Sequence record: MG592671.1
Direction: 5' to 3' (one strand)
Length of the DNA stretch: 64,000 nucleotides
The translations under genes were made by a program, and so were the position numbers. Position 1 is the stretch's first letter. Each line of letters begins with the position of its first letter. This document shows, one piece after another, positions 4,135-52,763 of this stretch. Under the pieces are notes generated by a model. The model did no database searches. It saw only the letters and a list, made by a program, of their open reading frames with translations, and had not been told where the DNA came from.

Positions 4135-4463
4135 AAGTTAGATTCACAGTACATCCACTTTTCGAGATGTATGAAGAAGATTACAATATTAGACAAGTAT
4201 CGGTGAAGATTGACAGCGATCGTATTGCTGTCATTAATTGCCAAAAAACAAAAGATAAATGGGGCGAGCCTAAATTTGTTATACTAAAAGGACAACTTAC
4301 CTATAGAGAAATGACTGGCTTAGGGTTCGCAATGCAACGCGCCCAAAAGATTATGATGTCTATAGGTCAACTTGTAGTAAGTACAGCTGACTTAGAGCTT
4401 TTAATAGAGAAGGCTGACGGGGAGACTCACGGACCATGCCATGCCCTATCCAACGACGAATAA
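4119..4463 (+). CDS. hypothetical protein
   Basis: ORF coupled to its neighbours. Confidence 0.7.
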   Translation: MSSEVKVRFTVHPLFEMYEEDYNIRQVSVKIDSDRIAVINCQKTKDKWGEPKFVILKGQLTYREMTGLGFAMQRAQKIMMSIGQLVVSTADLELLIEKADGETHGPCHALSNDE

Positions 4464-4723
4464 TGAATATTCTTCAAACACAGCATGAAATATGTGTGGA
4501 AGTAAAACACATTACTAAACGATATACTATGAAACACTCATACCGTAGTGTTGACTCGTTGAATATTCCTAGTGAGTGGATAAAAGTTATATACTTGATC
4601 AGCAGTACTGAGTTGTCAGAATACACTGAAGAGCAAATCATAAACGCAGTAAATCTACTGTCAGAAAAATCAAATGTATCTTTACATGTAGACGGTAAGC
4701 GTCTACGTTATAAGAAGGACTAG
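4463..4723 (+). CDS. hypothetical protein
   Basis: TAATG overlap places the start at 4463. Confidence 0.65.
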   Translation: MNILQTQHEICVEVKHITKRYTMKHSYRSVDSLNIPSEWIKVIYLISSTELSEYTEEQIINAVNLLSEKSNVSLHVDGKRLRYKKD

Positions 4724-11611: not shown

Positions 11612-12552
11612 AAACTTTATTTTTGCCAATCGGCATGCAGGCATCCGGAAAAACAACCTGGGCTAAAGAGCTTTGTAAGCACATGAACCGTAAAGGTTCG
11701 CAAAATCGTTTAGCATTGATCTCTCGTGATGAATATCGTGATATGCTTGCCGGTGGTATCGAGAACTACACGTTCGGTAATAAGTTCAGCACTGAAGTTG
11801 AATCAATGATTACTGATGCTGCGGTTCATCAAGCTGAATTAGCTGTTGCTAAAAACTTGAACATCGTTATTGCTGACATGAACTTAAACCCAGCAACTCA
11901 ACGTTCTTGGGAAAAGTTCGCTAAGAAGAACAACATGAAAGTTGAGAAGAAAGACTTTTATGCTGAGTGGCTAGCAACTGAAGGTTCTAAATTTGACCTA
12001 CTTGTTGCTGAAGATAAGTATCTTGAACTTATGATCGAGCGTGACTTGAAGCGTCCTAACTCACTTGGTCATGAAGTTCTTACTAATACCTTCAATAAGT
12101 ATCTTCGATCTGAGCTTATCCAACACGAGCATATCCCAGGTCTACCTTCAGCAGTTATCTTTGATGTAGATGGTACACTGGCAGAAATGAATGGTCGTAT
12201 GCCATACCAATGGAAACGTGTTGGTGAAGATACAGTTCGTGAAAATGTTGCTCGTGTACTTCGAATGCACCACGCAGCTGGTGATAAAATTATCATCCTT
12301 AGCGGTCGTGATGGATCATGCCAACCAGAAACTGAGAAGTGGTTGAAAGATAATAATCTACACTATGATCATATCTGGATGCGAGCTCCAAAAGATCAAC
12401 GCAAAGATTCAATTATCAAAAATGAACTTATCGATGATCATGTAAACGGAGTATTTAATGTTCATTGCGTTTACGACGATAGAGATCAGGTAGTTCTAGT
12501 ACATCGTCGTAAAGGATTAGACTGTTTTCAAGTAGCACCTGGCGCATTCTAA
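11608..12552 (+). CDS. pseT: Polynucleotide 5'-kinase/3'-phosphatase (T4 PseT-like)
   Basis: Walker A GMQASGKTT; HAD motifs FDVDGTL and YDDR. Confidence 0.92.
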   Translation: MKTLFLPIGMQASGKTTWAKELCKHMNRKGSQNRLALISRDEYRDMLAGGIENYTFGNKFSTEVESMITDAAVHQAELAVAKNLNIVIADMNLNPATQRSWEKFAKKNNMKVEKKDFYAEWLATEGSKFDLLVAEDKYLELMIERDLKRPNSLGHEVLTNTFNKYLRSELIQHEHIPGLPSAVIFDVDGTLAEMNGRMPYQWKRVGEDTVRENVARVLRMHHAAGDKIIILSGRDGSCQPETEKWLKDNNLHYDHIWMRAPKDQRKDSIIKNELIDDHVNGVFNVHCVYDDRDQVVLVHRRKGLDCFQVAPGAF

Positions 12553-12594
12553 TAAAATGATATAATATCTATGTTAATTTAATATAGAATTATT

Positions 12595-12781
12595 ATGCTA
12601 AAGAAAAATAAATGCTTGTAAATTGTGCGGCGGTACAATTTACAAGCATCAAACATATTGTACTATGGAATGTTTTAAAACATTTATTAACCTGCCTGAT
12701 GAAAATGGCGAATCTCAAGCTAAAATAAAAATAAAAAGAATAGGAAAAGCTACGAGAGAATATCTGTCAAAAACGGATTAA
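12595..12781 (+). pseudogene. Frameshifted remnant of a Zn-finger (HNH-type) endonuclease
   Basis: CKLCG...YCTMEC is out of frame with ATG12595. Confidence 0.45.
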
Positions 12782-12931
12782 CCATAGAACAAATCGAGTT
12801 AACAATTAGAGAGATGGTATAAGGTACAACAAAGATGATTATATCCATTAACTTGATTTGCTTCTTTATAGATTATAGACGCAGCAATAACTCCTAAAAT
12901 TTGTATTATAACATTTAACTAGGTATATGAT

Positions 12932-13216
12932 ATGCTCACGCCACATATGATTGAACATATGTTTGTTGAAACAAAAGGAAAATTTAGCTTCATCTGTTTC
13001 AAGAGAGCTGAAAATACAGTCGAAAAACGTACTGTTAGGCAGTTGTTGAGCTACCTTGGTATATCATTTCACTTTATTCCTGGTAGCTATGTACACGAAA
13101 ATCTTGTGCAGGGAGCAGATTCTGAAATAAGTTCTGATAATATCAAATGTGATTCTTGCTCTTGCTATCAGATAAAAACTGAAGACTTGGCACACCTTGC
13201 ACTAATGGGTTTATAA
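12932..13216 (+). CDS. hypothetical protein (C-terminal tag family)
   Basis: Ends EDLAHLALMGL. Confidence 0.7.
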   Translation: MLTPHMIEHMFVETKGKFSFICFKRAENTVEKRTVRQLLSYLGISFHFIPGSYVHENLVQGADSEISSDNIKCDSCSCYQIKTEDLAHLALMGL

Positions 13217-13443
13217 TGACAGAAAAAGAATTAGTGGTTCTTATTAAACATCTTATGGAAAGAGAACCACATTTCCCTTATTCCCATATCTCTGCTGGTG
13301 TTCCGTTAACACTTAATGCATGTCTGACATTTGCTATTGAGTATTGGCAAGACATTCCTACAAGGGGTGTCTTTGAAAAGCACACAATCTATGGAACATT
13401 TGCTATGTGGCTTAGAGATCGTGACTGGGGGAAAAACTTATGA
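13216..13443 (+). CDS. MTE-family small protein
   Basis: MTEKE start and central YWQDI. Confidence 0.7.
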   Translation: MTEKELVVLIKHLMEREPHFPYSHISAGVPLTLNACLTFAIEYWQDIPTRGVFEKHTIYGTFAMWLRDRDWGKNL

Positions 13444-13715
13444 GTTTAGATCTACAAGGATCTATTAGTTGGATTACTGGCAACGACCCTTACCATTATC
13501 ATGATGAAGATGAGTTCTGTTCTAGACTAAAACAACAAATCAGATACACTAGTCGTATTTCACAAGATGAATTCTACGGTAAAGATTATGTGATCAAAGA
13601 ATATAATAATCTATTCCACTTTGCAGAATACGGTTGTTATTTTTGGGAATCGTGGAACGGTTATAGTATGGATATCTTCTGGCGCCCAGTAAAGCTGGAT
13701 CCTCTGTTTAGCTAG
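13440..13715 (+). CDS. hypothetical protein
   Basis: ATGA coupling. Confidence 0.7.
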   Translation: MSLDLQGSISWITGNDPYHYHDEDEFCSRLKQQIRYTSRISQDEFYGKDYVIKEYNNLFHFAEYGCYFWESWNGYSMDIFWRPVKLDPLFS

Positions 13716-13720
13716 GCAGT

Positions 13721-13750
13721 AGCAATACTACCTTATTAACGTGTTATAAT
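13721..13750 (+). promoter_or_regulatory. Phage promoter driving the MTE array
   Basis: GCAATA-N14-TGTTATAAT (core at 13742). Confidence 0.7.
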
Positions 13751-13761
13751 AAAGTATAATT

Positions 13762-13977
13762 ATGTCAAATGAAGATCTTCTTTTAGAGAATTTAAATCTC
13801 TGTTTTGCGATTATTGAGACTAATATTGTAACTATTAGTGGTCCTATTATTGGAGTTGGTTCTCTTATAGATAAAGATTTGGCAGAGAAATCACTTTCTA
13901 TGGTGTATATAATACTTACTCGTATTCTCGATGGAGAATGCCACGGTATGAAATGGGAAGAGTTTGCTTATGACTGA
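13762..13977 (+). CDS. First small ORF of the tandem array
   Basis: Its stop lies inside ATGACTGA. Confidence 0.65.
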   Translation: MSNEDLLLENLNLCFAIIETNIVTISGPIIGVGSLIDKDLAEKSLSMVYIILTRILDGECHGMKWEEFAYD

Positions 13978-14245
13978 CGAAGAAACACTTGAATTATTAA
14001 AATTTTTTATATATAAACTTAAAACAGGCAACCTCACAACAAAAATCAACATCAATGAGCGCTTAACATTTATATTGGGAGGGGGAGAAATCCAAGTTCC
14101 TTCTACTGATACTGCCTTCGATCAAAGTATTATTGCTCGATGGTGTAGAGCTTACAATACAGAAATCCATCGTGTTGAATATAAACCTCATAGATGTGAA
14201 TTACATCCAGTAGTTAAGCAAAAACGTACGGACTGGCAGCAATGA
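13970..14245 (+). CDS. MTE-family small protein
   Basis: MTDEE. Confidence 0.7.
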   Translation: MTDEETLELLKFFIYKLKTGNLTTKININERLTFILGGGEIQVPSTDTAFDQSIIARWCRAYNTEIHRVEYKPHRCELHPVVKQKRTDWQQ

Positions 14246-14439
14246 CGGAAGATCAAATATATAATACTATTAAACATTTAGTAGAAGATCTAAGGATTAA
14301 CTCCAACAATAAAAGTATTGTATGGCAGATCAATTTATCGTTCATAGCAATAATGGAACAATCATCTAATATTGTCATTAATGAATGGTATTATGTTATT
14401 GATTATGCTCTGAAGCATAGGATGTCGTTGCATGACTGA
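14242..14439 (+). CDS. MTE-family small protein
   Basis: MTEDQ. Confidence 0.7.
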   Translation: MTEDQIYNTIKHLVEDLRINSNNKSIVWQINLSFIAIMEQSSNIVINEWYYVIDYALKHRMSLHD

Positions 14440-14641
14440 AGAACAACTTCAAACAATTGTTTCGTCCCTTTCTTGTGATTTAGAACAATGGCATAGCTAC
14501 ACAAGACTAGGGTATCAAATAGAACTCCAAACTGTTATGATTTATTGGAACGATATCCTTATTGACCGAGGATATTTGTGGCCTGATTTCCGTCAATGGA
14601 TGGCTAACAACAAACATAAATGGGTTAGATTTGATGACTGA
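14432..14641 (+). CDS. MTE-family small protein
   Basis: MTEEQ, IYWNDI. Confidence 0.7.
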   Translation: MTEEQLQTIVSSLSCDLEQWHSYTRLGYQIELQTVMIYWNDILIDRGYLWPDFRQWMANNKHKWVRFDD

Positions 14642-14867
14642 AAAACAACTATACATTTTAATAAAATATATAAGTTCCAGAGCTAGTTATAACTCCATAG
14701 TAACTACTAGTTTCTGGGGCCAGACATTGTTTATTCTTTCTCAACACTGGCAAGATATCAACTTAGGACTAGGTGATATAGGGGAAAAGTTAGAATCTCC
14801 TGATAATCTAATAGTCCTATATAAGGCATGGGCTGCTACTAAATGTCCCTCAGGATATTACCTATGA
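14634..14867 (+). CDS. MTE-family small protein
   Basis: MTEKQ, QHWQDI; start moved to ATG14634. Confidence 0.7.
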   Translation: MTEKQLYILIKYISSRASYNSIVTTSFWGQTLFILSQHWQDINLGLGDIGEKLESPDNLIVLYKAWAATKCPSGYYL

Positions 14868-15049
14868 CTGAAAAACAATTCTTAATAGCTTTCACTGGCT
14901 CATTTCACTTAGTTGAGATGGGCAATTGGAGTGCTTGGTTTATAACTCAACTGTGTGAAAATTGGCATGCAGATATGGATTTGGATCCATCCGAAACTTT
15001 GTACTCTACAATTGTAGATGCTTTTTGTTATAGTGGGTATATGTCATGA
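14864..15049 (+). CDS. MTE-family small protein
   Basis: MTEKQ, ENWHAD. Confidence 0.7.
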   Translation: MTEKQFLIAFTGSFHLVEMGNWSAWFITQLCENWHADMDLDPSETLYSTIVDAFCYSGYMS

Positions 15050-15246
15050 CTGAGGATTTGGTAGCAAGATTAGTTATCATGTTAAGTGATGAACTTAAAC
15101 CAAGCACTATTACAACTCATCGTGAAGATCTCAATCGTCAACTAATCGCAGTTTTAATATTTTGGCCTGAGATGAAATGCCTGACTATAAGTCAAGCATT
15201 AGGTGATATTCGTAAATGGGTAGATAAGGTGTTATGTCATGACTGA
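15046..15246 (+). CDS. MTE-family small protein
   Basis: MTEDL, IFWPEM. Confidence 0.7.
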   Translation: MTEDLVARLVIMLSDELKPSTITTHREDLNRQLIAVLIFWPEMKCLTISQALGDIRKWVDKVLCHD

Positions 15247-15436
15247 AGATATAGCTACTGAGATTTGTATGAGGCTAACTAGAGATCTCAGTAGATTTCG
15301 ACATCGTCCTAGATGGGTGAAAACTTGTGCTTGGTACTTACAGACTCTTATAGAGACGTGGCCTGAAAGTAAGGCAACTACCATTATTGAATTTCTTGAT
15401 GAGCATATAGAACCTGATGGTGAACGTGATGTCTGA
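15239..15436 (+). CDS. MTE-family small protein
   Basis: MTEDI, ETWPES. Confidence 0.7.
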   Translation: MTEDIATEICMRLTRDLSRFRHRPRWVKTCAWYLQTLIETWPESKATTIIEFLDEHIEPDGERDV

Positions 15437-15641
15437 AGAACAGTTTTATAACGTAGCTCACTTTTATATCGACCTGCATGATTATCTTCAAAATTACCCA
15501 GAACGTCCATACCCTGTGATGCTTGCAACATTATGCAAACACTGGAAAGATATCATTATTGTTGAAGACTGGATGGTCATTGAGGAATTCAAAGACTGGG
15601 TTGATGATAACGAAGATAAAATAGTGGTATTCCATGACTGA
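15429..15641 (+). CDS. MTE-family small protein
   Basis: MSEEQ, KHWKDI. Confidence 0.7.
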   Translation: MSEEQFYNVAHFYIDLHDYLQNYPERPYPVMLATLCKHWKDIIIVEDWMVIEEFKDWVDDNEDKIVVFHD

Positions 15642-15837
15642 AGATAATGCTAATGATATTTTAGTTGAGCTTGTTAAGACACTTGAAAAAGACATAACCA
15701 ATACGAATACTATTACAATAAATCGTTTGTTCTACTTCACTCAAAATTGGCCATCAATAAAGACGATCGATGTATTCCATTATTGTATGTATCATAGTGG
15801 TATATATTATAAAGAGGAGCAACTCATCAATGACTGA
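15634..15837 (+). CDS. MTE-family small protein
   Basis: MTEDN, QNWPSI. Confidence 0.7.
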   Translation: MTEDNANDILVELVKTLEKDITNTNTITINRLFYFTQNWPSIKTIDVFHYCMYHSGIYYKEEQLIND

Positions 15838-16042
15838 AGATCAATTTGTTGGTATTTTAGACCTTCTTTTGTGGTCGTATCAGTTTGGAGAAACTGCTGA
15901 TTCTAGAGATGATAAAGCTTATTCTCTTAATAGAATATATTATCTAGCTGAAAACTGGCATTCATTAGATAGAATGACCTGTGCTGAATACATGACTTGG
16001 TACAGCCAAAATAGTACCCACCTACATAAACTTATTAATTAG
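15830..16042 (+). CDS. MTE-family small protein
   Basis: MTEDQ, ENWHSL. Confidence 0.7.
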   Translation: MTEDQFVGILDLLLWSYQFGETADSRDDKAYSLNRIYYLAENWHSLDRMTCAEYMTWYSQNSTHLHKLIN

Positions 16043-16085
16043 GAACGTCCTGCTCCGCATTAACTACCAAATAAAGAAAATTAAT

Positions 16086-16361
16086 ATGGCAAAAGCTAGA
16101 CCTAATGTGGATGTCTGTCTTGAGCATATATGCACTTACAATAATGAATATCAAACGTGTGGTCGACCTAAATTATCTGATATTTTGTCAGGAAGTCCAA
16201 CAACAACGTCGATGATTACAGAAGATAAGATGGCTATTGTTGCTATGTATCGTTATTTTGGATGTAAAATTTATGGAACTCTGAAGCAAAAGATTAAGAT
16301 CCATTATAATGCTCATGAAGAACTTGATCAAGTAACACTTACACTTGGAGGCTCACTATAA
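16086..16361 (+). CDS. hypothetical protein (C-terminal tag family)
   Basis: Ends EELDQVTLTLGGSL. Confidence 0.7.
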   Translation: MAKARPNVDVCLEHICTYNNEYQTCGRPKLSDILSGSPTTTSMITEDKMAIVAMYRYFGCKIYGTLKQKIKIHYNAHEELDQVTLTLGGSL

Positions 16362-16678
16362 TGGACTTAGAAGAATTTGTTAAATTCGTTCAAATAGCTA
16401 AAGACTTCAATAATGAATATATTGAAGTAAAAGATTCATATAGACGCCAATGCTCTATAAAAGATCTTACTCACAAAATTGATAACTGGACTGCTTCTAG
16501 TATGTTCAAGATTTTAGCCCAGGAAAAGCTAGATAGACTTCTTAAGTATCAGTCTTGTCTAGAATATTTCAAATGCCATACACCAGAAGCGTGTATCCGT
16601 AATGCTGATTATATAATTGCTGATATGTCTGACGAAGACCTTGTTACCCTATCCCTATTAGGAATATTCAATGAGTGA
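16361..16678 (+). CDS. hypothetical protein (C-terminal tag family)
   Basis: Ends DEDLVTLSLLGIFNE. Confidence 0.7.
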   Translation: MDLEEFVKFVQIAKDFNNEYIEVKDSYRRQCSIKDLTHKIDNWTASSMFKILAQEKLDRLLKYQSCLEYFKCHTPEACIRNADYIIADMSDEDLVTLSLLGIFNE

Positions 16679-16865
16679 TTTCTTTCGTTGGGCATACGCC
16701 GTTCTAGCAGTTATTACATATGTTCCTTACGGTTTAATGTGGTACTGCGCTCCAAAAGTTTTTAAACTGCAAAACTTAGATCCATTAGAAGAGTTAGGAT
16801 TTATGATCAGCGCGATCGCAATCACTATTCATAGACTGCTAATAATCACGTATTTTATTATATAA
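16671..16865 (+). CDS. Small membrane protein
   Basis: Two hydrophobic segments. Confidence 0.6.
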   Translation: MSDFFRWAYAVLAVITYVPYGLMWYCAPKVFKLQNLDPLEELGFMISAIAITIHRLLIITYFII

Positions 16866-16871
16866 GGAAAC

Positions 16872-16914
16872 TCTCCAATAGTAATGTTATAATAAAGTAA
16901 TATTCTATTGGAGA
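16872..16914 (+). promoter_or_regulatory. Promoter inside a 10-bp SD-occluding hairpin
   Basis: TCTCCAATAG / CTATTGGAGA flank TGTTATAAT at 16885. Confidence 0.75.
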
Positions 16915-16919
16915 AAATT

Positions 16920-17885
16920 ATGGAAAAGCGACAATTTGTGCATGATTTATCTGAGGATGCGTTTGCGGAGTATCTATCTAGTTTTAAGCATCCTTACTCA
17001 AGAGGCATACAAGGACAGCTAAATTTTGAGAAGCACGTGAATAAATTAGGATGGAGTTTTCCTGAGGATTATTTTTATGATGCAGGGTATAAGAAATTAT
17101 CGTTAATATGCCCTAAAAATCACGTGAGAGAAATGAAACCACAAGACTTTATAAAAACTAAAGATTGCTCACTCTGCTCAGGTATGCAAAAAGAAGGAGC
17201 AGAAGAAAATATAATCAAACTTTTTGAATCAGAAGGTTATAAAAAAGATACCTCGTTCGAATATATTAATAATCACACTAAACTTGATTTAGTATGTCCT
17301 GTAGGACACAGTACGAGAATACTACCACATAGATTTAGGACAGGCACACGCTGTGATATCTGTACAGGGTTCAATAGAGATCTAACAAGACAAAAATTTT
17401 ATGATATATTAGATAATATCGGGTACATAATTGAAGGAGAGTTTGAATATAATAATGGTAAATCTAGAGTTAAGTTGATATGCAATGAAGGGCATAAATT
17501 TGAATCTTGTCCTGAAGATATTAAAAGAGATGTTAGGTGTTCTGTATGCTATATGCCTAAAGGTGAGCGCGAAGTATTAGCATATCTTGAAAAGAACAAT
17601 ATCGAATATAGAACTCAGCAAACTTTTGACGATTGTGTATATCGCAGTAAATTACGCTTTGATTTTAGTATTATTATTAATGGGGAAATGAGGCTTATTG
17701 AATATAACGGAGAGCAACATTATCACTGTAGAGGTTTATTTGATAATGAAGAAGCATTTAAAATCCAACAAATAAAAGATAATATAAAACGTGACTATTG
17801 TAAGAAACATAATATCCCACTTCTTGAAATAAAATACACAGAATTTAGAAACATTAACTTAATCTTAGAAGGTTTTATAAAATGA
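16920..17885 (+). mobile_element. Free-standing homing endonuclease (Zn-ribbon repeats plus PD-(D/E)XK/DUF559-like domain)
   Basis: CP-GH...C-xC repeats; LRFDF, IEYNGEQHY. Confidence 0.75.
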
Positions 17886-27464: not shown

Positions 27465-28322
27465 ATGGCTAAATCTGTAGCTGGGGTTAACAAATACCCC
27501 TTCGGAACAACCGGAATACGTATAGCCGCAGCATCAATGACGTCTGACTCTGGAACAGTCGTGTCAATAACTGGCGAGAAATGTATACTTAAACAAGCAT
27601 CATCATCGCAGTATAAAATTATTGCTGATAGCGCTGGAACATATACTATAGATACAGTTACGTTCACAGCAACCACAACAGCCCCTGATGCGGGTGGCGG
27701 AACTATTGCATTTAACATAGACAATATTTCGTTTACAGTGGCATATGATGAAGACACTACTAGTGATGAACTTGCGACAGAGGCTGCAAGAGTTGCCAAT
27801 CTAGCTGGAATAGCAGCAGTAGCATCTAATGACGTCTGTACGTTCACTCATACTGTAATTGGCCCTCAGCCACAAATTACATACACCATTAACGACAATG
27901 ATGATCTTGCTCCGCCAGTTCTCGATGTCACATCAGTTCCTGGCCTTGCTGAAGTGTTCACAGAAGTTGTGCGCCCTAAAAGTATAGGCAAGCAAGAATT
28001 ACTTTTTGATATTATGTCTTATGGTATAGCTCCTGCAGACACAGACAGTGAAGTCGCAACAAAACTATTTGAAACTCCAGGATCTTTTGCTATACGAGTG
28101 TGGAAGCGTGATATTAACGGTGATCCTGTCCAAGCTGGATACATATATGAATTAGGCCAAAAAATAGTATCTATTGCTGTTCCTAGCACTGGTATTGAAA
28201 CAGATCTAACAGATACATATGTTACTGGCTCGTATGAGTTAGTTAGTATGTCTGCTGGTGTTCCAGTAATCCCTGCGGGATCTAAATCTAAGTATTTCAT
28301 AGAAAGTCGTTTAGCCAGCTAA
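27465..28322 (+). CDS. Probable virion structural protein
   Basis: Thr/Ala/Val-rich beta composition; ATAAATA at 27425; SD AAGGAG. Confidence 0.55.
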   Translation: MAKSVAGVNKYPFGTTGIRIAAASMTSDSGTVVSITGEKCILKQASSSQYKIIADSAGTYTIDTVTFTATTTAPDAGGGTIAFNIDNISFTVAYDEDTTSDELATEAARVANLAGIAAVASNDVCTFTHTVIGPQPQITYTINDNDDLAPPVLDVTSVPGLAEVFTEVVRPKSIGKQELLFDIMSYGIAPADTDSEVATKLFETPGSFAIRVWKRDINGDPVQAGYIYELGQKIVSIAVPSTGIETDLTDTYVTGSYELVSMSAGVPVIPAGSKSKYFIESRLAS

Positions 28323-28341
28323 ATATTTGTAATTCCACCTC

Positions 28342-28376
28342 AAAAAAAGAGCTACTTTAAAGTAGCTCTTTTTTTT
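28342..28376. terminator. Bidirectional terminator between convergent genes
   Basis: A7-GAGCTACTTT/AAAGTAGCTC-T8. Confidence 0.9.
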
Positions 28377-28377
28377 G

Positions 28378-29136
28378 TTATCTAATAACAAAATCCGCAT
28401 ATTGGACAACTAGTCCTTCAGTGTTATCCCCTGATACCCTAACATCAATAACATCGCCAGTGCTTAATGACGTTACTGCAAACAATGATTCTGAATTAAC
28501 ATTATTCACTCCACGAGTTGAGAAAATAGTAGGAATCGTGATAGGCGATCCATTCTTAAACACATTAATTCGGTATTCATCAGTGCCACCAGCGCCAGAA
28601 GTACAAACTATTTTTGCATCGATGTATACTGGCGTGCCACTAGCATCAGGACCGGTGTATGTGAGAGATCCGTCAACGCTATTTTGATCAAAATTTCTTA
28701 TAAATGTTGTTGAGAACCCAGTACTAGCACCAGTAACTATTTTTGTATATTCGCTAACATCGCCTGTTGTTGGTGTTAGTGTTGTGTTTTGATCTTCAAC
28801 CCATGCATGTGCGTAGCATACTCGGTGCTCTATGTATGCCCATGCTCCTTGAGATCCGTCAGTAGTATACATGTGGAGCTCATCCGTATCAGTATTAAAT
28901 ACAACTAGACCATCAGATGCTTCAGTTAGGGCATCGCGTTCTAACGTAGTTACGTTAGGGATCACAACACCTCCTGATATGTCTCCTGATTCCCCTAAAA
29001 TAGTTTGCACGCCATCAACAACATTAACCACGCTACCGTTTGGAAAAATATAAAGACCATTCTCTAAATTACTATCATCCAGTCTTTTATTTTTTTCTGC
29101 CACTAATTTTTTGTATAATGATCGATTATTACTCAT
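28378..29136 (-). CDS. Probable fibre/structural protein with a C-terminal beta-sandwich
   Basis: SD AAAGGAG before ATG29136; IPNVTTLERDAL...GLVVFNTD motif; C-terminal LSTGDVIDVRV. Confidence 0.55.
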   Translation of the reverse strand: MSNNRSLYKKLVAEKNKRLDDSNLENGLYIFPNGSVVNVVDGVQTILGESGDISGGVVIPNVTTLERDALTEASDGLVVFNTDTDELHMYTTDGSQGAWAYIEHRVCYAHAWVEDQNTTLTPTTGDVSEYTKIVTGASTGFSTTFIRNFDQNSVDGSLTYTGPDASGTPVYIDAKIVCTSGAGGTDEYRINVFKNGSPITIPTIFSTRGVNNVNSESLFAVTSLSTGDVIDVRVSGDNTEGLVVQYADFVIR

Positions 29137-45450: not shown

Positions 45451-45542
45451 GGCGGGTTGGTAGAGTTTGGCTTATTGCACCTGACTTGAAATCAGGCGAA
45501 CCTTAAACGGTTCCGAGGGTTCGAATCCCTCACCCGCTTCCA
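45451..45542 (+). tRNA. tRNA-Ser(UGA)
   Basis: Class II cloverleaf, loop CTTGAAA, CCA; discriminator U. Confidence 0.9.
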
Positions 45543-45544
45543 AT

Positions 45545-45620
45545 GCAGGGATAGCTCAGTAGGTAGAGCACGTGATTGAAAATCACGGTCGCGCCAGTTC
45601 AATTCTGGCTCCTTGCACCA
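45545..45620 (+). tRNA. tRNA-Phe(GAA)
   Basis: 76 nt, loop TTGAAAA, CCA. Confidence 0.92.
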
Positions 45621-45723
45621 ACAGTGCGTACTCCTCTAATACACCTCGGTAATATTACGTTTACGCCTTCTTAATTTGTTAGTCTGTGATGGAAAAGAAA
45701 AATAATCTCAAGGAGATAAAACA

Positions 45724-45930
45724 ATGGCTAAATCCTATGTACAGATCAAGTACCTTACAGTAAGCGAACTTGATAAACTAAATGACAAGCGTTTAGTGGA
45801 AGTGCTAAAAGTTGCTCGTAAACACTTCAAGATTCTTGAAGCTGGTGAATTTACTGTTGACGAAGTTGCGTCAGCTGAAACATACCACAACCAAGTCAAA
45901 GCTATTAGCGAGACTCGTAGTAACGTATAG
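45724..45930 (+). CDS. hypothetical protein
   Basis: SD AAGGAG. Confidence 0.7.
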   Translation: MAKSYVQIKYLTVSELDKLNDKRLVEVLKVARKHFKILEAGEFTVDEVASAETYHNQVKAISETRSNV

Positions 45931-45942
45931 TAATCTACGTAC

Positions 45943-46031
45943 AGGGAATGTTCTTGTCAGCGGTCTCCAAAACCGTCGAGAATAAACAGACTTGTGGTGC
46001 TCTAGGGGTTCGATTCCTCCATTCCCTGCCA
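45943..46031 (+). tRNA. Atypical tRNA-Trp(CCA) lacking a normal D-arm
   Basis: Acceptor AGGGAAT/ATTCCCT-G-CCA, loop CTCCAAA, T-loop TTCGATT; only ~10 nt where the D-arm should be. Confidence 0.65.
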
Positions 46032-46047
46032 AATTTTATAAGATATT

Positions 46048-46269
46048 ATGAAAAGTTATAAAAGTAATTGCTTATTTGAAGCAATAAAACTACGATTTAA
46101 AATACCTAACAGTTCATTTAAAATGAAGTGGACAGAACAAAGTTGGATATTCCCTCATTGTTATGTTGAGACCGAAACGCATAAGATTGCTTTTGTTGGA
46201 TTATATTCCGATGAACCACCTTTAGCCCATTTTTGGTACATAGGTAGAATAAAAAGTAGATTGAAATAA
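46048..46269 (+). CDS. hypothetical protein
   Basis: ORF between tRNAs. Confidence 0.6.
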   Translation: MKSYKSNCLFEAIKLRFKIPNSSFKMKWTEQSWIFPHCYVETETHKIAFVGLYSDEPPLAHFWYIGRIKSRLK

Positions 46270-46272
46270 TTC

Positions 46273-46362
46273 GGAGGCATGGCAGAGCGGCTTATCGCGC
46301 ACCCCTGCTAAGGGTGTAGACCTTAATAGGTCTCGTTGGTTCAAATCCAACTGCCTCCGCCA
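46273..46362 (+). tRNA. tRNA-Ser(GCU)
   Basis: Class II, loop CTGCTAA, G73-CCA. Confidence 0.93.
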
Positions 46363-46364
46363 AT

Positions 46365-46453
46365 AGAGAGATGACTGAGTGGCTTAAGGTACTCGCTTGG
46401 AAAGCGAGAGGAGGCATAGCTTCCCGCAGGTTCGAATCCTGTTCTCTCTGCCA
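46365..46453 (+). tRNA. tRNA-Ser(GGA)
   Basis: Class II, loop TTGGAAA, G73-CCA. Confidence 0.93.
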
Positions 46454-46478
46454 ATATATTTTTAAACAAGGACTTAAT

Positions 46479-46724
46479 ATGTTCGTAGTAATTTTTGGTC
46501 AACCAGGTTGCCCATTCTGCACAAAAGCAGTAGATCTAGCTGAAAAATATAAAACAGAGCGCGATGATTTCAACTATCGTTATGTTGATATCAAAGCAGA
46601 AGGCATTAGCAAAGCTGATCTTTCAAAAACAGTAGGTGAAGAAGTGACCACAGTGCCACAAATCTTCATTGATCAAACACCAATTGGTGGTTACACGCAA
46701 TTTGAAGCATACAATTTAGACTAG
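46479..46724 (+). CDS. grxA: Glutaredoxin 1
   Basis: GQPGCPFC, TVPQIF, IGGY; start corrected to ATG46479. Confidence 0.93.
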   Translation: MFVVIFGQPGCPFCTKAVDLAEKYKTERDDFNYRYVDIKAEGISKADLSKTVGEEVTTVPQIFIDQTPIGGYTQFEAYNLD

Positions 46725-46738
46725 GAGTAAAACAGCAA

Positions 46739-47194
46739 GTGGAACACGTCATTACGTTCCTTCAGGATTACCTGTCCTGGATCATGAACGGTGTATCGAT
46801 GGTGGCAGCATATTGTCTTTCTAATCAGAGAGCAGTCGTTGGTCGATACTTAGGTGCAACAGGTGCATCTCTTTTTATATTATACGGCGTGGTGACAAAT
46901 CAGCCTGCTTTTGTGGTAGCTGATATCATCTTCCTGTACATTTACATTAGTGCAGTTTTGAAGTTCAATAAGAAACGAGATTCTTATCGTGAAAAAGCAG
47001 CGGATGATGAAGAAACTATTGCTCAAATGCGAAAGATCATCAAACGTGCTAATACAATTGAATTAGAAATTCTTGAAACACGTATTGGTAAGCAAACGAA
47101 AAAGAAACTTGAACTCCGTAAATCATTACAGAAGCAACTTTATATTCTGTTGAAGATTGGCGAAAAGATTGAAAATGACATCGAGGACGAGTAA
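46739..47194 (+). CDS. Membrane protein with a C-terminal coiled coil
   Basis: Three short TM segments; SD AGGAG. Confidence 0.65.
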   Translation: MEHVITFLQDYLSWIMNGVSMVAAYCLSNQRAVVGRYLGATGASLFILYGVVTNQPAFVVADIIFLYIYISAVLKFNKKRDSYREKAADDEETIAQMRKIIKRANTIELEILETRIGKQTKKKLELRKSLQKQLYILLKIGEKIENDIEDE

Positions 47195-47208
47195 AATCGT
47201 CCTTTTTT
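47184..47208 (+). terminator. Terminator
   Basis: AGGACGA-GTAAAA-TCGTCCTTTTTT. Confidence 0.75.
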
Positions 47209-47223
47209 GTGACTAAAATTTAT

Positions 47224-47342
47224 GGGCTCATGGCGAAGCGGGATCGCGATTTAGTTTAGTACCTAGATCTAGGAGTACGCATCCGCAACACTCTTAACCG
47301 GCATGATCGGTGACGTTGGTTCGAATCCAACTGAGTCCACTA
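47224..47342 (+). ncRNA. tRNA-like RNA with G3.U70/A73 and a replaced anticodon arm
   Basis: GGGCTCA/TGAGTCC-A-CTA, D-arm and T-arm present. Confidence 0.65.
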
Positions 47343-47349
47343 TTAACTT

Positions 47350-47568
47350 GTCGAGCTGGAAAACAAAGCCTCTGAAACTGTAAAGCCTCCACAAGGTTAA
47401 CAGATTGTAGAAGATTCGTTATACTAAGAGAATCAGGGGAGATAATGTTTGGTCAGAGTAACAAATAGATATGGAATATTAGAGGAAAAGCTAGTAGACA
47501 GTGGAACTACTTGCAGAACTCTTTTAAGACGTTGAAACTACGGGGTTCGATTCCTCGTCTCGGCACAA
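47350..47568 (+). ncRNA. 219-nt RNA with tRNA-like termini
   Basis: GTCGAG/CTCGGC-A-CAA; T-arm CGGGG-TTCGATT-CCTCG. Confidence 0.55.
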
Positions 47569-47572
47569 AAAA

Positions 47573-47664
47573 GGAATACAATCGAAAAAGGGCTTGTAGT
47601 AGGCACTGAGACCCAGAAGCCCTGAAATACCCATTCAGATCGTCTGTAAGCAGTGCTGTATTCC
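47573..47664 (+). ncRNA. 92-nt pseudoknotted RNA element
   Basis: GGAATACA/TGTATTCC, AGGGCTT/AAGCCCT, GCACTG/CAGTGC. Confidence 0.55.
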
Positions 47665-47674
47665 TATTAACTAT

Positions 47675-47969
47675 GCCCCTGATGTTCAATACTTGAATAA
47701 GGGAATCCCTGTAAGGCTGGAGTCACCCGGAGAGACAGATTACGATACTATATCACTCACTAATACACTGGATCCAGATCGCGTGTTCGTGACTGTGACG
47801 GTAGTATAGTACGTGTCGTAAAGAGATGATTCCTGTGATACGGTATAAGCTGGTGTAGAACTCGCTCGTGAAGGTAGACTGAAAGCGGACCAAGTGTGAC
47901 TACTTGGCAAAATCCAGGAGTATGTTGAGACTATGAGTTGGGTGGTTCGATTCCACGCCAGGGGCAACA
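47675..47969 (+). ncRNA. ~295-nt RNA with tRNA-like termini
   Basis: GCCCCTG/CAGGGGC-A, T-arm GTGG-TTCGATT-CCAC, internal helices. Confidence 0.65.
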
Positions 47970-48032
47970 ATTCAGGATAACGCAAACGCATTATCCTCAT
48001 TAATATGTGTTAATATAATACAACAACATTAT

Positions 48033-48103
48033 CCCCGTTCCCTAACGTGACACTACAGAAATAATAGAGTTGCTGGACGTTCGAATCGTCAAGCGGGGTC
48101 TAA
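48033..48103 (+). pseudogene. Degenerate tRNA-like element
   Basis: CCCCGTT/AGCGGGG and GACG-TTCGAAT-CGTC only. Confidence 0.45.
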
Positions 48104-48131
48104 TCATCCTTAATATCAAAGGTACTTCATA

Positions 48132-48869
48132 ATGGATAATATCCTTCTGTTCGCTGGACACAACACGTCAAAACGTGGCGGCATGGCCGATTTCGTTGCT
48201 GCATTTAGTTCTGTTTATGCAGCACAAAAGTTTATTGAAAACGAGAACACCCAACACACCCTGCTTGACACACTCCCAAGTTTACAGTGGGCACATTTGT
48301 ATAACACAAATGAAGGTCGTATTGTGCAGAAAGGCAAGATCGAGATCTGGGGTCGTGAAGATATTGGAAATGAAGATGATGAAGAGACTAAGTTCACATG
48401 GTCACCGTGTGATGATGAAAAGGATCTTCAACCTCTAATGGTTCAAGCAGCTAACGACAATAGTGCTCGTGAAAAGGCCGAAGAAGAACGTATTGCTAAA
48501 GAAGAAGCAAAACTTGCTGCTGAACAGGCTATTGAAGATTCGGTTGCTAATACTATCATTCGCGTAGTTCCCTTTGATCTAGGCGTTATTGACTCTGTAG
48601 TTGATGAAATTGAAGTTCAATTAGAGTTTGCATTTAATCTTGAAGCAATGAAGCAAGAAGGTGAAATCACCAATCGACACGTAAAAGTATTGACTATTTC
48701 ATTTTCAGATGAAGATAAAGCTCTACTTGAGAGTATGGGTGGTCCTAGTGCGCCAGGTCATTGGGTAAGTAAAGCTCAGCAGCATTTTGATGACGAAATG
48801 ATCATGGCATTTTTTGAAAACGAAGTTCTAACCGAGGACGAAGTTAGCTCAGTAGCAGAGGTAGCTTAA
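48132..48869 (+). CDS. Acidic hypothetical protein
   Basis: 245-aa ORF. Confidence 0.8.
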   Translation: MDNILLFAGHNTSKRGGMADFVAAFSSVYAAQKFIENENTQHTLLDTLPSLQWAHLYNTNEGRIVQKGKIEIWGREDIGNEDDEETKFTWSPCDDEKDLQPLMVQAANDNSAREKAEEERIAKEEAKLAAEQAIEDSVANTIIRVVPFDLGVIDSVVDEIEVQLEFAFNLEAMKQEGEITNRHVKVLTISFSDEDKALLESMGGPSAPGHWVSKAQQHFDDEMIMAFFENEVLTEDEVSSVAEVA

Positions 48870-49237
48870 TGGCTGACTTTACTTATGAAGATGCTATAGC
48901 ATCACCTGAGGGCACTACCTTTTGGGTATGTGCTCACTCTCGTAGGGATGTCACTAAGAAAGCACAGCGTTATCAAGAACCACAGCAAGCAGTTGTGGTA
49001 AGTGACGGTGCAGTAATTCGTGGATCGAATTTTCTTGTCCTTCTTAATAACAAGGGCAATATGACCAAGAAGAAAGTCATTCGCACATCTACTTATATCT
49101 ATGATGATAAGGATGAGTGTGCAGCTAGATTCAATGCGTTAAGTATTGAGATTCGAGATCGCTATATGGATTACTCTCGATACGTGGCAGAACAAGCTAC
49201 AGCGCTGAGCAAGCTAATTGACAAATACAGCAAATAA
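48869..49237 (+). CDS. hypothetical protein
   Basis: TAATG coupling. Confidence 0.75.
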   Translation: MADFTYEDAIASPEGTTFWVCAHSRRDVTKKAQRYQEPQQAVVVSDGAVIRGSNFLVLLNNKGNMTKKKVIRTSTYIYDDKDECAARFNALSIEIRDRYMDYSRYVAEQATALSKLIDKYSK

Positions 49238-49460
49238 CGGGATATACTGAAAAGGGCATCTCCGAAGCTATCATCCTAGGAAATGTGGCGATCATTGTTG
49301 TCGGTTATTAGGTATATTCAAGTCTACTCCGAAAGCACGGGCTGACGCGGGAGCGTTGGGCGAAGTAGAGGTTCAATTCCTCTAGCACACTTGATAACAA
49401 ATCGGGAGAGTGTGTTCTGGGTGAAATATTAGGGTGCGAGTCCCTTAAGTAGACGCCCGT
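49237..49460 (+). ncRNA. 224-nt structured RNA with a permuted tRNA-like domain
   Basis: T-arm followed by GCACACT/AGTGTGT hairpin; closed by GTCTACT/AGTAGAC and ACGGG/CCCGT. Confidence 0.6.
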
Positions 49461-49485
49461 AATTAACTACATGGAAGGATCAAAT

Positions 49486-49929
49486 ATGGCAAAGGTAATT
49501 GTCTCTACAGAACGAGAAACTATTTCGGAATACTCTTCTTCAGAGAAATATGGCGATTGGAGCTCAGACCACACTTATCGAGTTACTGGAGTGCGCTTGT
49601 GCTCATCGATAGATGATGCATGGGAAGAAACTTTCGAACTAGGTGATGTTAAAGCTGGCGACGAAGTTCATGTCTTATCTATTGTATACGGAACTGGCGA
49701 CAGTTTTGGCAAATCATCTGGTAATGGCGAAGTGGTAATGGTTTACAAGAGCCGTGCCTTAGCTGAGCAGGCATACAGTATGTATGATGAAAAGTCTGGC
49801 GATTACTCGATCAAACTCCCGTTTGAAACTCCTAAAGGCACTGAATTCCGCGCTATTAGCAACCCAGCAGCTGGATATTTTGAGTGCTTGGAAAGTCTAG
49901 ATCTAGAAACATTCATTGTCGGAAACTAA
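49486..49929 (+). CDS. hypothetical protein
   Basis: SD GGAAGGA. Confidence 0.75.
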   Translation: MAKVIVSTERETISEYSSSEKYGDWSSDHTYRVTGVRLCSSIDDAWEETFELGDVKAGDEVHVLSIVYGTGDSFGKSSGNGEVVMVYKSRALAEQAYSMYDEKSGDYSIKLPFETPKGTEFRAISNPAAGYFECLESLDLETFIVGN

Positions 49930-49938
49930 CAATTTACT

Positions 49939-50853
49939 CTAATGTTTTATCCCTAGTTTTTCAAGTAACACCTGTTTGACATTATCATCGTATCTAATAC
50001 GTAATATATTTCCGAGTTCTTCAGCTTTGGCAGTTTTCACTGTATCTCGATGTTGAGCTCTATTAAATCCATCTGTATCTTTATGAAAGATTGGGACAAA
50101 TTCATAGTGCTGTTTGCCATCATACTCAACAAATAGATTATAATCAGGCAGATAGAAATCATAGTAATACTTACAATCAACATCGTTAACTCTGTATTGC
50201 TGAATATAAGTAATATTATTATCATCTAAGATCTTTTTAGTTTCAAGCTCACCTTTAGAAGTTCTACAATTAGGACAGCCTGATTTCATACTTATATGGG
50301 CACTGCCTTGTTGATAAAAAATTCCATGTTTAGAGCAAATAATAGGATGTCTATCATCATATGCGCTATAATCAATCAGTGAATAATCATACAAATCACC
50401 ATGAACATCTTTAGCTTTTTGAATAAATTCTTCTTGTGTTAGAGTATTTGATTTATTTCTTGATAGTTGCCCACAGACTTGACAACTGTGTTTGCCGTTG
50501 ATGAGATTATCAGGAGTCATTTCGAATTCTCCATGTTCAGAGCAGATTATCACAACTTTTGTGTGGGCTCCTTTATATACAACCTTACTAAGATCATATT
50601 TTTCACCATGAATCTTTTTGAAGTTCTCTATAAATTGTTCTTGCGTGATACTATTATTAGGTATAAAACAATCAGGACAGGAACCAGTTCTAGCACCTAA
50701 ATGATTTCTAGCCATACAAGAAAATTCTCCATGATCTGGGCATATTATAGTTACGGCACTTTGTCTGTTTTTGAAATTTTCTATTAACGAGTAATCAAAT
50801 CTATCGCCAAATTTACTTTTGGCTTTATTGATGAACTTTTCTAAATTAGTCAT
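49939..50853 (-). mobile_element. Free-standing homing endonuclease (CPxHGEF repeats plus DUF559-like domain)
   Basis: Three ICxxHGxF...CxxC repeats; YDFYL, VEYDGKQHY; antisense insertion. Confidence 0.8.
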
Positions 50854-50899
50854 GGTATAATCCTTATGTTATATCATATTTATAAAAAGGAGTGAGCCC

Positions 50900-51736
50900 G
50901 TGGGCAGCTGGTATGAAACTGACTTTCTTACAAATCTACCTATTCAAGACGATGATGAAGTGATGGTGTTCTTCTTAGAGCAACAACATGGATTAGTTCC
51001 TACAAGTTCTATAACTTATTCACATGATATATATCGACCTATAGGTATTCCTATTCAAGGGTGGTATGACGATTACGGTCGTTATAAACTTAATGAGGGT
51101 GATATAGTATATGATCATATGCTAGAACATCTACGTTCAAAAGTTATGCCTATGGAAGAAGGTTCTAATAGATATCACGAAAAAGCAGTAATCCCAGAAA
51201 CTATGACATGGGAAAACGTTTTCGAGAATATCCATGAAGAACGGCTAAAGACTCACTCGCACTACAACGGTTCTAAGAATCACATTGTTGAAGTAGCAAT
51301 TCATAGAAGCATTTATGATATGATGTCAGAAGAATGCACTACTTGGAAAGGCACTCAAACTTGGAACGATGAATACCAAGATCTAAAGGCCAAAATAGCT
51401 AAAGCTCGTGAAGATATTGATAACGGAACTCCTGAGAGAATTGCTAGTGCTATTATGCGAATGGAAATAGGAGAAATCCTAGGCAGGTTCGCACCATTTG
51501 ATAGTGTTTCTTTCAAAGACATGTATTATGCAGCAGTTGATGATGGGCAAGAAGATCATTATCTAAGAGCACTTGCTAAAATGAAAGTATTCAATACAAA
51601 CTTATCCATGTTGCGTAAATCTTGGATGCCACAAGCTGGCACAGGATCACAGGATGCTGAATTTGAATTACACATAAAACTAAATGGTGTAGTAACAATG
51701 TTTGCTCATAATAAGAAGAGGAGTTACGATGAATAA
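50900..51736 (+). CDS. hypothetical protein
   Basis: GTG start; SD AAGGAG. Confidence 0.75.
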   Translation: MGSWYETDFLTNLPIQDDDEVMVFFLEQQHGLVPTSSITYSHDIYRPIGIPIQGWYDDYGRYKLNEGDIVYDHMLEHLRSKVMPMEEGSNRYHEKAVIPETMTWENVFENIHEERLKTHSHYNGSKNHIVEVAIHRSIYDMMSEECTTWKGTQTWNDEYQDLKAKIAKAREDIDNGTPERIASAIMRMEIGEILGRFAPFDSVSFKDMYYAAVDDGQEDHYLRALAKMKVFNTNLSMLRKSWMPQAGTGSQDAEFELHIKLNGVVTMFAHNKKRSYDE

Positions 51737-51983
51737 TCCCGGCTATCATGTTACCCTTATAGATAAAGGTTCACTAGGTGAGCTTTCAAAGATCTTAGAG
51801 GAAATCAACGAAGCTATTGATGCGGAAAAACAGGGTTGTAAAATTATGACCCTTATTGAACTATCTGATATGATAGGAGCAACAAAGCGCTACCTTGAAA
51901 AACATCATCCTGATATAACACTTGACGATTTGCTAACAATGGCAGATATTACACGTCGCGCATTTGAGAACGGACACAGATAA
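51729..51983 (+). CDS. MazG-like all-alpha pyrophosphatase-like protein
   Basis: SKILEE..E..DA and IELSDMIGA acidic pattern. Confidence 0.5.
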   Translation: MNNPGYHVTLIDKGSLGELSKILEEINEAIDAEKQGCKIMTLIELSDMIGATKRYLEKHHPDITLDDLLTMADITRRAFENGHR

Positions 51984-52540
51984 TGAATATAGACACATCG
52001 CTTATTTTTCAGGCCATAAAACACTACGAAGAGTATGGCTATAATATGGTCACTGTTCCTATGTTAGTAGATGAAGAAGCATCTAGGCTAACAAAGCCTA
52101 AGGGATGCAAAGATCTATATCATAAAGATAAAGTCTACGTAGCATCTGCTGAACAGAGTTTTATCCAGTTGTATAACGAAGGTGAGCTAATGACAGGAAA
52201 ATATATGGCATTAACTCCTTGTTATAGAGATGAACCTGAATTAGATGATACACACTTCAATATCTTTTTGAAGCTAGAACTAATCAAAGTTTATCGAGAA
52301 GGCTATAAACCAGGTGCCTCTGTTGTGTTAGATGATGCATATGATTTCTTTAAGCCATTAGCAAAATACAACACAAAACTTGTTAGTTTTGGAAATAATA
52401 ATCACGATATAGAAATAAATGGACTGGAAGTAGGCTCGTATGGATATCGTCAGTTCTCTGATGGTACATGGTACGTTTACGGAACAGGAATAGCTGAGCC
52501 AAGACTTAGTTACGCATTAGGGAAATCCAATGACGAATGA
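51983..52540 (+). CDS. Stand-alone class II aminoacyl-tRNA synthetase-like catalytic core
   Basis: VASAEQ, motif 2 PCYRDE..H..F-KLE, IEINGLEVGS, motif 3 GTGIAEPRL; no anticodon-binding domain. Confidence 0.7.
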   Translation: MNIDTSLIFQAIKHYEEYGYNMVTVPMLVDEEASRLTKPKGCKDLYHKDKVYVASAEQSFIQLYNEGELMTGKYMALTPCYRDEPELDDTHFNIFLKLELIKVYREGYKPGASVVLDDAYDFFKPLAKYNTKLVSFGNNNHDIEINGLEVGSYGYRQFSDGTWYVYGTGIAEPRLSYALGKSNDE

Positions 52541-52763
52541 TGAATACTTTGAATACCTGCATGATCTACAAAAGCAGGGATATATGATATACGATAATTC
52601 TCGTATGGTTCAGGACTTTATCTCAATTGAAAAAATTGATGGAGTATGGAGGTATTTTTATCACGAAGACACTGAAGGTGAAATAGACTGTGATATGGAT
52701 GGATGCTTTACTGTATACAAGGATGTCACTGCTGAAGTAAAGCAATCAACTACAATGTTATAA
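52530..52763 (+). CDS. hypothetical protein
   Basis: ORF. Confidence 0.6.
   Translation: MTNDEYFEYLHDLQKQGYMIYDNSRMVQDFISIEKIDGVWRYFYHEDTEGEIDCDMDGCFTVYKDVTAEVKQSTTML

Follow-up and report, generated by a model that had tools for sequence, protein, structure and literature searches.

Small genes arranged head to tail have been described in several viral and bacterial systems. In poxvirus gene accordions, including the K3L arrays, the copies are near-identical and recent, and their number varies within populations (PMC6115191, PMC9973261). The T4-type hyperplastic regions organised around promoter-early stem-loop (PeSL) elements carry non-essential small early genes, most of them ORFans, in the intervals that separate conserved genes, and short conserved boundary motifs mediate shuffling there (PMC2839356, PMC4122927). 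In bacterial polymorphic toxin loci, the immunity proteins are each thought to neutralise a different partner (PMC3482391). At the level of the single gene junction, the 4-nt overlap ATGA is the commonest overlap in prokaryotes (PMC10666635, PMC12548453, PMC3887535). Here we consider a tandem array of small genes at positions 13970-16042 of a stretch of 64,000 nucleotides (the window) from sequence record MG592671.1. The window matches Vibrio phage 2.275.O._10N.286.54.E11 (MG592671.1, 348,911 bp; host V. cyclitrophicus) at 100% identity, window positions being record positions minus 124,000. This phage is distantly related to the Rak2/GAP32 jumbo myoviruses, and its pseT product is ~36% identical to theirs. 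GenBank annotates NVP2275O_232-244, which cover the array region, all as 'hypothetical', with 13762-16042 corresponding to NVP2275O_234-244. Our preferred reading, to which we assign a probability of roughly 60%, is that the small (61-78 aa) and mostly acidic proteins of the array, predicted to be three-helix bundles, form an old tandem family specific to this lineage, which lies in the accessory part of this Rak2/GAP32-like jumbo vibriophage genome and serves as a host-binding repertoire in a coupled early operon.

Ten consecutive plus-strand open reading frames (ORFs) of 61-91 aa fill 13970-16042, each starting with MT(E/D) or MSE, as a first-pass annotation made from the letters alone had stated. 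Their products begin, in order, MTDEE, MTEDQ, MTEEQ, MTEKQ (twice), MTEDL, MTEDI, MSEEQ, MTEDN and MTEDQ, and a separate copy at 13216 begins MTEKE. Because pairwise BLAST connects only a few pairs of copies, homology was assessed with leave-one-out profile hidden Markov models (HMMs), each copy being scored against the other nine (Z = 570 six-frame segments). Values of E ≤7e-5 were obtained for the 75-aa separate copy NVP2275O_232 (13216..13443; E 2.8e-5) and, within the array, for 14242..14439 (65 aa, E 6.1e-6), 14432..14641 (69 aa, E 1.1e-5), 14634..14867 (77 aa, E 2.2e-5), 15239..15436 (65 aa, E 3.7e-6), 15429..15641 (70 aa, with the MSE start, E 2.8e-5), 15634..15837 (67 aa, E 1.9e-7) and the last member, 15830..16042 (70 aa, E 7e-5). 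Weaker values were found for 15046..15246 (66 aa, E 0.038), which has an orthologue outside this phage, and for 14864..15049 (61 aa, E 0.21), the most divergent and a probable member by its common N-terminus, tryptophan motif and position in the array. For the start of NVP2275O_242, GenBank gives 15417 (74 aa); we favour the ATG at 15429 (70 aa, 8-nt overlap) because it agrees with the alignment of the family, with the orthologue outside this phage and with a gene call made independently on Logan contigs.

These comparisons support nine of the ten array ORFs and the copy at 13216 as true paralogues. A 13-sequence HMM run over the genome finds 11 copies at E ≤2e-11, the next segment scoring 0.12. 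The eleventh copy, NVP2275O_176, lies outside the window, 34 kb upstream (record 104,171-104,407), and had been recovered by a genome-wide six-frame scan (E 1.6e-6) before its inclusion in the model; it is solitary, with its own Shine-Dalgarno (SD)-like sequence. The first-pass count of ~11 tandem paralogues, with one further copy at 13216, stands for that copy and the nine array ORFs, and does not extend to the first ORF of the ten, 13970..14245 (91 aa), which is family-like in its N-terminal helix only: its HMM E values are 0.96 and 3.4, and hhalign aligns residues 1-21 only (P 0.0056). Single-sequence AlphaFold modelling of this ORF, with a mean predicted local distance difference test score (pLDDT) of 54 that is too weak to settle the fold, gave a helix at residues 3-18 followed by strands. 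Its membership is doubtful, and it may be a chimera or a degenerate copy. The array region had also been drawn as beginning at 13762, where the 71-aa ORF 13762..13977 proved to be unrelated to the family (HMM E 35; hhalign E 0.34); it is the first ORF after a promoter motif, hydrophobic (grand average of hydropathy +0.40) and ends in an 8-nt overlap. It was rejected as a member, as was the 91-aa ORF 13440..13715 (HMM E about 30, hhalign E 0.28), which follows the separate copy, precedes the array and is likewise unrelated, and a weak HMM match at 4418-4720 (E 4e-4; 0.12 with the larger model) was dismissed as chance.

Across the 13 aligned sequences of the family, Met1 and Glu3 are invariant (13/13), Thr2 is found in 12/13, and eight further columns are hydrophobic in at least 12/13. 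The central tryptophan motif of the first-pass annotation is likewise borne by 12/13 sequences, and the member at 14242 lacks the tryptophan. The conserved N-terminal stretch amounts to only 3-5 residues, and similarity extends over all three helices of the predicted fold. AlphaFold2, given the ten-copy alignment with member 14432 as the modelled sequence, returned a three-helix bundle (helices 3-19, 26-41 and 49-59; pLDDT 81.7, predicted template modelling score 0.67). Foldseek found a single convincing match to this model in BFVD, an unnamed 77-aa entry (template modelling score 0.71, probability 0.98, 23% identity), which from its length and identity is most likely paralogue 14634 modelled independently. 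One helical fold common to the copies, in line with the shared helical first half of the first-pass annotation, is supported by this model and this match. Against the PDB, Foldseek gave nothing significant (best E 8.7), a profile search of PDB sequences was empty, and Pfam, PHROGs and NCBIfam scans of all members were empty as well. The ten window copies have isoelectric points (pI) of 4.1-6.5.

The sequences of the paralogues are highly divergent, with 9-29% identity outside the first residues and no near-identical copies. When 1.84 billion representative proteins were searched exhaustively with a profile, only two outside proteins were returned, P0011, 53% identical to the member at 15429, and P0012, 55% identical to that at 15046, each a clear reciprocal best partner; a word-indexed search of 5.8 billion proteins had given self matches only, and the orthologue that it overlooked was recovered by the exhaustive search. 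P0011 and P0012 are adjacent on one 558-bp ENA metagenome contig (ERZ23498370). The known family, with 11 genomic copies and two outside proteins on one contig, has the distribution of a lineage-specific expansion. Among GenBank phages a DNA search matched only phage 2.275.O itself, with no close relative. With two of the members, two pairs of orthologues and the adjacent pseT as queries, IMG/VR, JGI metagenomes and GTDB genomes yielded no related locus. Since the paralogues are 9-29% identical, compared with about 49% per orthologue pair, the duplications long predate the split from this relative. The orthologues also differ unevenly along their length: between 15429 and P0011, columns 42-56, the segment after the tryptophan motif, are identical at 1/15 positions, compared with 13/14 in the C-terminal tail. 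15046 and P0012 follow this pattern as well, and in both pairs the residues directly behind the tryptophan motif are almost fully replaced.

This history bears on the explanation put forward in the first-pass annotation, that the copies form an accordion, or a store of cassettes, made up of fast-evolving anti-defence genes in which the junction is a recombination site, allowing members to be gained, lost and shuffled while coupling is kept. No pair of copies is more than 29% identical, which leaves recent amplification unsupported, and duplications older than the split from the relative rule out a recent accordion. Two Logan contigs from separate sequencing runs, both of phage 2.275.O, are 100% identical to the window across 14902-16876, and they count against this explanation. 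In favour of exchange, the 558-bp contig carries the 15429 orthologue directly before the 15046 orthologue, with an 8-nt and then a 4-nt overlap, whereas the order in the window is 15046, 15239, 15429. This is a single, weak hint that order varies; it fits block duplication and loss, exchange at the junctions, or differential loss of older paralogues, and it comes from one short contig. The early location and the small, mostly acidic products would suit anti-defence proteins, but no similarity to described anti-defence families was detected in Pfam, PHROGs, NCBIfam, PDB sequences and folds, or BFVD folds. An anti-defence role is a guess: the products are small and mostly acidic and their position is early, which agrees with such a role without being specific to it.

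The remaining argument for a cassette store comes from the junctions, which are unusual. All 10 junctions in 13762-16042 overlap, seven by 8 nt and three by 4 nt, in agreement with the earlier statement that each upstream ORF ends at start+3 or start+7. About 5 among roughly 465 junctions elsewhere in the annotation have 8-nt overlaps (Fisher P 9e-11), and these use TAA; 16 sampled large genes use TAA or TAG, never TGA. The sequence ATGACTGA stands at 8/10 array starts, the remaining two being ATGACGGA and ATGTCTGA, compared with nine copies elsewhere on the plus strand in about 347 kb (Poisson P about 7e-16), one of which begins an annotated gene. In its 8-nt form the junction closes the upstream protein with two residues and the stop, and at the same time encodes Met-Thr-Glu/Asp of the next (Met-Ser-Glu at 15429); the upstream reading is (His/Asp/Asn/Tyr)-Asp-stop in 6/7 cases and Asp-Val-stop in the seventh (ATGTCTGA, at 15429). 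It was rightly noticed that the junction supplies a start codon plus TGA in both other frames: the 14-nt TATGTCATGACTGA is read in two frames, once as the end of ORF 14864, with a 4-nt overlap, and once as the end of ORF 15046, with an 8-nt overlap. A tail that acquires an insertion or deletion would exchange one form of overlap for the other and leave the genes coupled. DNA similarity between several junctions reaches 14-26 nt, including the SD-like AGG(A/T)G in some copies.

Conservation of this kind, together with the stopping of both other frames, could mark a site of exchange, but protein conservation and codon bias account for it. ACT is the commonest threonine codon of the phage (47.5%) and GAA its commonest glutamate codon (65%), and the synonymous excess at codons 2 and 3 of the family is not significant (ACT 8/11, P 0.08; GAA 9/11, P 0.21). 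At 13216 and NVP2275O_176, where there is no upstream gene ending at the second TGA, Met-Thr-Glu is kept and the threonine codon is ACA. These observations argue against a special DNA-level signal at the junction. ATGACTGA is conserved because each duplication passes on the conserved N-terminal Met-Thr-Glu together with the preferred ACT codon, and it is not an insertion device. The junction is a by-product of an N-terminal Met-Thr-Glu/Asp, which we read as a helix N-cap. Taken together, the evidence leaves the cassette store an improbable explanation, although it fares best among the alternatives.

A promoter-like extended -10 element, TGTTATAAT, lies at 13742..13750 on the plus strand, ahead of ORF 13762, and belongs to a motif, TGNTATAAT (mostly TGTTATAAT), that occurs 21 times in the window, compared with 6.6 expected (0/100 shuffles reach 21), with sites at, for example, 10483, 12558, 13742, 16885, 23741, 42761, 58599 and 59780. 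Of the 21, 17 are on the plus strand, mostly in gaps preceding genes and tRNAs, and GTTACA often lies ~14 nt upstream. TGNTATAAT probably represents the phage's sigma70-type promoter class. Around the array, exact copies of TGTTATAAT lie at 12558, 13742 and 16885; the interval 13750-16885 is free of them. The copy at 16885-16893 is enclosed by a plus-strand stem-loop at 16872..16914 (-19.9 kcal/mol, z -4.5; 0/200 shuffles fold as well), a likely downstream limit of the unit, and another stem-loop, with a 17-bp perfect stem (12612-12649; z -6.6), pairs with the promoter motif at 12558. No significant stem-loop was found between 13750 and 16872, nor at 13700-13765 or 16036-16095, and no known RNA family within 12000-17500. 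Since neither an exact promoter motif nor a strong hairpin interrupts 13750-16872, a single unit from 13742 to about 16870 is likely, made up of ORF 13762, the array and another three small ORFs. The first-pass annotation had placed all copies behind one promoter at 13742; the recurrent motif is indeed there, upstream of the array, but the copy at 13216 is upstream of the motif and belongs to the preceding transcription unit.

From this arrangement we infer that nine or ten copies and a few unrelated small ORFs are transcribed as one, probably early, operon from the host-sigma70-like element at 13742, with translation probably handed from gene to gene by termination-reinitiation at the 4-nt and 8-nt overlaps. 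Each paralogue may be a module that binds a partner of its own, probably a host protein of early infection, and so serve takeover or counter-defence. The suggestion of separate binding modules follows from the contrast between conserved core residues and a post-tryptophan segment that is hypervariable even between orthologues. Several observations weigh against this reading. The promoter is recognised by its motif and the coupling deduced from geometry. SD-like sequences precede only 4/10 array starts, a scarcity that would suit coupling, but the difference from two samples of other genes (8/17 and 11/18) is not significant. The relative is known from one 558-bp contig, from which an evolutionary rate is not calibratable, and the segment that we call hypervariable could be merely weakly constrained. 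The solitary copy NVP2275O_176 is basic (pI 9.3), so that acidity is not universal in the family, and no homology or fold match in Pfam, PHROGs, NCBIfam, PDB or BFVD indicates any function. Overlapping genes that are tightly coupled also show a statistical tendency to encode heteromeric complex subunits (PMC10666635), a point in favour of a different explanation of the array.

That explanation is that the paralogues are subunits of one hetero-oligomeric assembly, with the overlaps giving fixed proportions. It would account for overlap at every junction, 10/10 by 4 or 8 nt, since unidirectional neighbours that overlap show tight coupling and in many cases specify parts of one heteromeric complex (PMC10666635), and the conserved hydrophobic core columns and tryptophan agree with it. 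Fixed interfaces would not be expected, however, on proteins whose surfaces are almost wholly different among paralogues and, in one segment, strongly so between orthologues, and the copies at 13216 and record 104171-104407 are not part of the operon, one of the two having an SD-like sequence to itself. The genome also contains two other coupled arrays of unrelated proteins, which makes coupling look like a habit of this genome rather than a property of one complex. We regard a single assembly as unlikely. About equally unlikely, in our estimate, is a further reading, in which the copies vary one inhibitor scaffold in its specificity, every copy being directed against another version of a defence or takeover target in the host, and in which the frame-proof junctions would let related phages permute, gain and lose members by recombination. 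If true, such a repertoire would be a phage counterpart of bacterial immunity-gene arrays.

The extreme divergence of the copies, the absence of the family from all other known phages in protein searches, and the possibly degenerate or chimeric state of ORF 13970 might suggest that the array consists of redundant leftovers of old duplications, drifting neutrally and without individual roles. This is very improbable. All of the recognisable window copies (10/10) are intact, and the start, the stop, the core columns and (14242 excepted) the tryptophan have been kept despite 9-29% identity; two intact orthologues persist in the relative at about 50% identity. Intactness argues against neutral drift because unconstrained ORFs of this age would have gained stops in a 37% GC genome. 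We consider the copies to be real genes, all of them intact and two with orthologues elsewhere. Least credible of all are virion-internal proteins of the T4 internal-protein (IP) type, whose conserved N-terminus would be a capsid-targeting signal: the (near-)invariance of the first three residues in 13/13 sequences and the prohead core protease encoded by the phage would fit, but similarity runs through the whole fold, the conserved N-terminal stretch covers only 3-5 residues, the upstream motif is sigma70-like and also precedes tRNAs, with no TATAAATA-type motif nearby, and the array lies far from the head genes.

The position of the array is consistent with the host-binding repertoire that we prefer. 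Its surroundings are an accessory, non-structural part of the genome, with RNA ligase, pseT, MutT, ClpP, phosphoesterases, NAD salvage genes and tRNAs, and it sits among nucleotide-metabolism and RNA-repair genes. Its composition is native (GC 32-38%), and a foreign origin was rejected on this basis. Three small plus-strand ORFs unrelated to the family follow the array (16086-16361, 16361-16678 and 16671-16865); they have no Pfam or PHROG match and are probably on the array transcript. Directly downstream of the operon is a homing endonuclease gene (16908-17885; PHROG 559, 'HNH endonuclease', E 7e-54), two paralogues of which are found on the minus strand at record 173,942-174,868 and 228,899-230,050. 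Upstream, a gap of 379 nt (12553-12931) holds no annotated gene.

Two of the ORFs behind the array, 16086-16361 and 16361-16678, and one ahead of it, 12932-13216, flank it on both sides and carry a short motif at the extreme C-terminus, consisting of acidic residues, (V)TL(T/S/A)L(L/G/M)G, 1-5 residues and the stop. Exactly 8/3735 six-frame segments end in this way, all of them annotated plus-strand genes, the other carriers being at record 28084-28389 and 110,950-112,275. The latter interval is that of NVP2275O_192-195, and kinship of ORFs 12932, 16086 and 16361 with these genes was rejected, there being no detectable similarity beyond the common C-terminal motif. As the phage encodes ClpP and a Clp ATPase, one possibility is that this ending acts as a C-terminal tag. 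Elsewhere in the window, eleven tRNA genes form three clusters within 45451-61399. One copy of ATGACTGA, at 46371, falls inside tRNA-Ser (46365-46453), so that the ORF listed there is probably spurious. The record as a whole also contains two clusters, one at record 119-126 kb and one at 227-272 kb, that together hold fourteen paralogous genes for pectin-lyase-fold (tailspike-like) proteins, a feature typical of Rak2-like phages with branched fibres.

The Met-Thr-Glu array is not the only tandem family of this phage. A second and larger array, NVP2275O_157-173 (record 98,681-103,604), consists of 17 consecutive ~100-aa ORFs, at least 11 of them paralogous, with a conserved basic C-terminal tail ending Arg-Arg-Arg-Gly-Ile-Gly and overlaps of 4 nt or 1 nt. 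A third, NVP2275O_192-195 (record 110,950-112,275), comprises four ~110-aa paralogues with 4-nt overlaps, and one adjacent pair in it, 71% identical, is the only recent-looking duplication seen in these arrays. Both resemble the Met-Thr-Glu array in being same-strand series of divergent tandem paralogues with overlaps and with a conserved terminus beside the junction, and they differ from it in that the conserved end is the C-terminus, not the N-terminus. A link between the Met-Thr-Glu family and either array was rejected (hhalign probability below 1%). The presence of three unrelated coupled arrays in one genome suggests that tandem expansion under coupling is a general route to new small proteins in this phage lineage.

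Jumbo phages are full of ORFans, and tandem families such as this one are rare cases that reveal, by sequence and nothing else, which residues form the scaffold and which are free to vary. The array offers a clean example, with eleven copies, one confident small predicted fold, a nearly invariant tryptophan and a hypervariable segment, and it illustrates how genes in a chain can stay coupled while their tails shift frame, given a start/stop overlap in which both other frames are stopped. Its present value is descriptive.

Among the systems described at the outset, the PeSL regions of T4-type phages share several features with the array. As in those regions (PMC2839356, PMC4122927), small early genes occupy a slot between conserved genes, and the slot after pseT is variable: its syntenic counterpart in GAP32, from pseT to the phosphoesterase/ClpP genes, is filled by nine small ORFans unrelated to one another. 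Pairs of a sigma70-like motif and a strong stem-loop bracket the block here too (12558 with 12612-12649; 16872-16914), and the short conserved boundary sequence of the array could support exchange. The array differs in that its internal boundary is a coding start/stop overlap, with no promoter-terminator cassette between its genes, and in that these genes are paralogous to one another, whereas the genes of PeSL regions are unrelated. It resembles the poxvirus accordions and K3L arrays in carrying head-to-tail copies of one small gene in a large double-stranded DNA virus, and both have been interpreted in terms of host-virus conflict (PMC6115191, PMC9973261), but the phage copies, at 9-29% identity, are older than the split from their sole known relative. 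The tandem, small and divergent immunity proteins of polymorphic toxin loci (PMC3482391) offer an analogy only, since those loci are bacterial and their immunity genes lie beside toxin genes, while neither a toxin partner nor homology was seen at the array. T4 IP proteins, in turn, have only an N-terminal capsid-targeting peptide in common, in contrast to a similarity here that spans three helices. The junctions follow the familiar geometry of overlapping start/stop coupling, on the same strand and with the upstream TGA within or just after the next ATG (PMC10666635, PMC12548453, PMC3887535), and depart from it in the much rarer 8-nt form at 7/10 of the array junctions. Bacillus phage G, with about 35 copies of a zinc ribbon, is a further case of one small domain multiplied in one jumbo-phage lineage, with a role guessed at most (PMC7824862); the array family differs from it in being a predicted three-helix bundle without metal ligands and without homologues in the databases searched. 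As an expansion of a phage gene family the array is of an ordinary kind, and the protein family itself is a new one of a familiar type.

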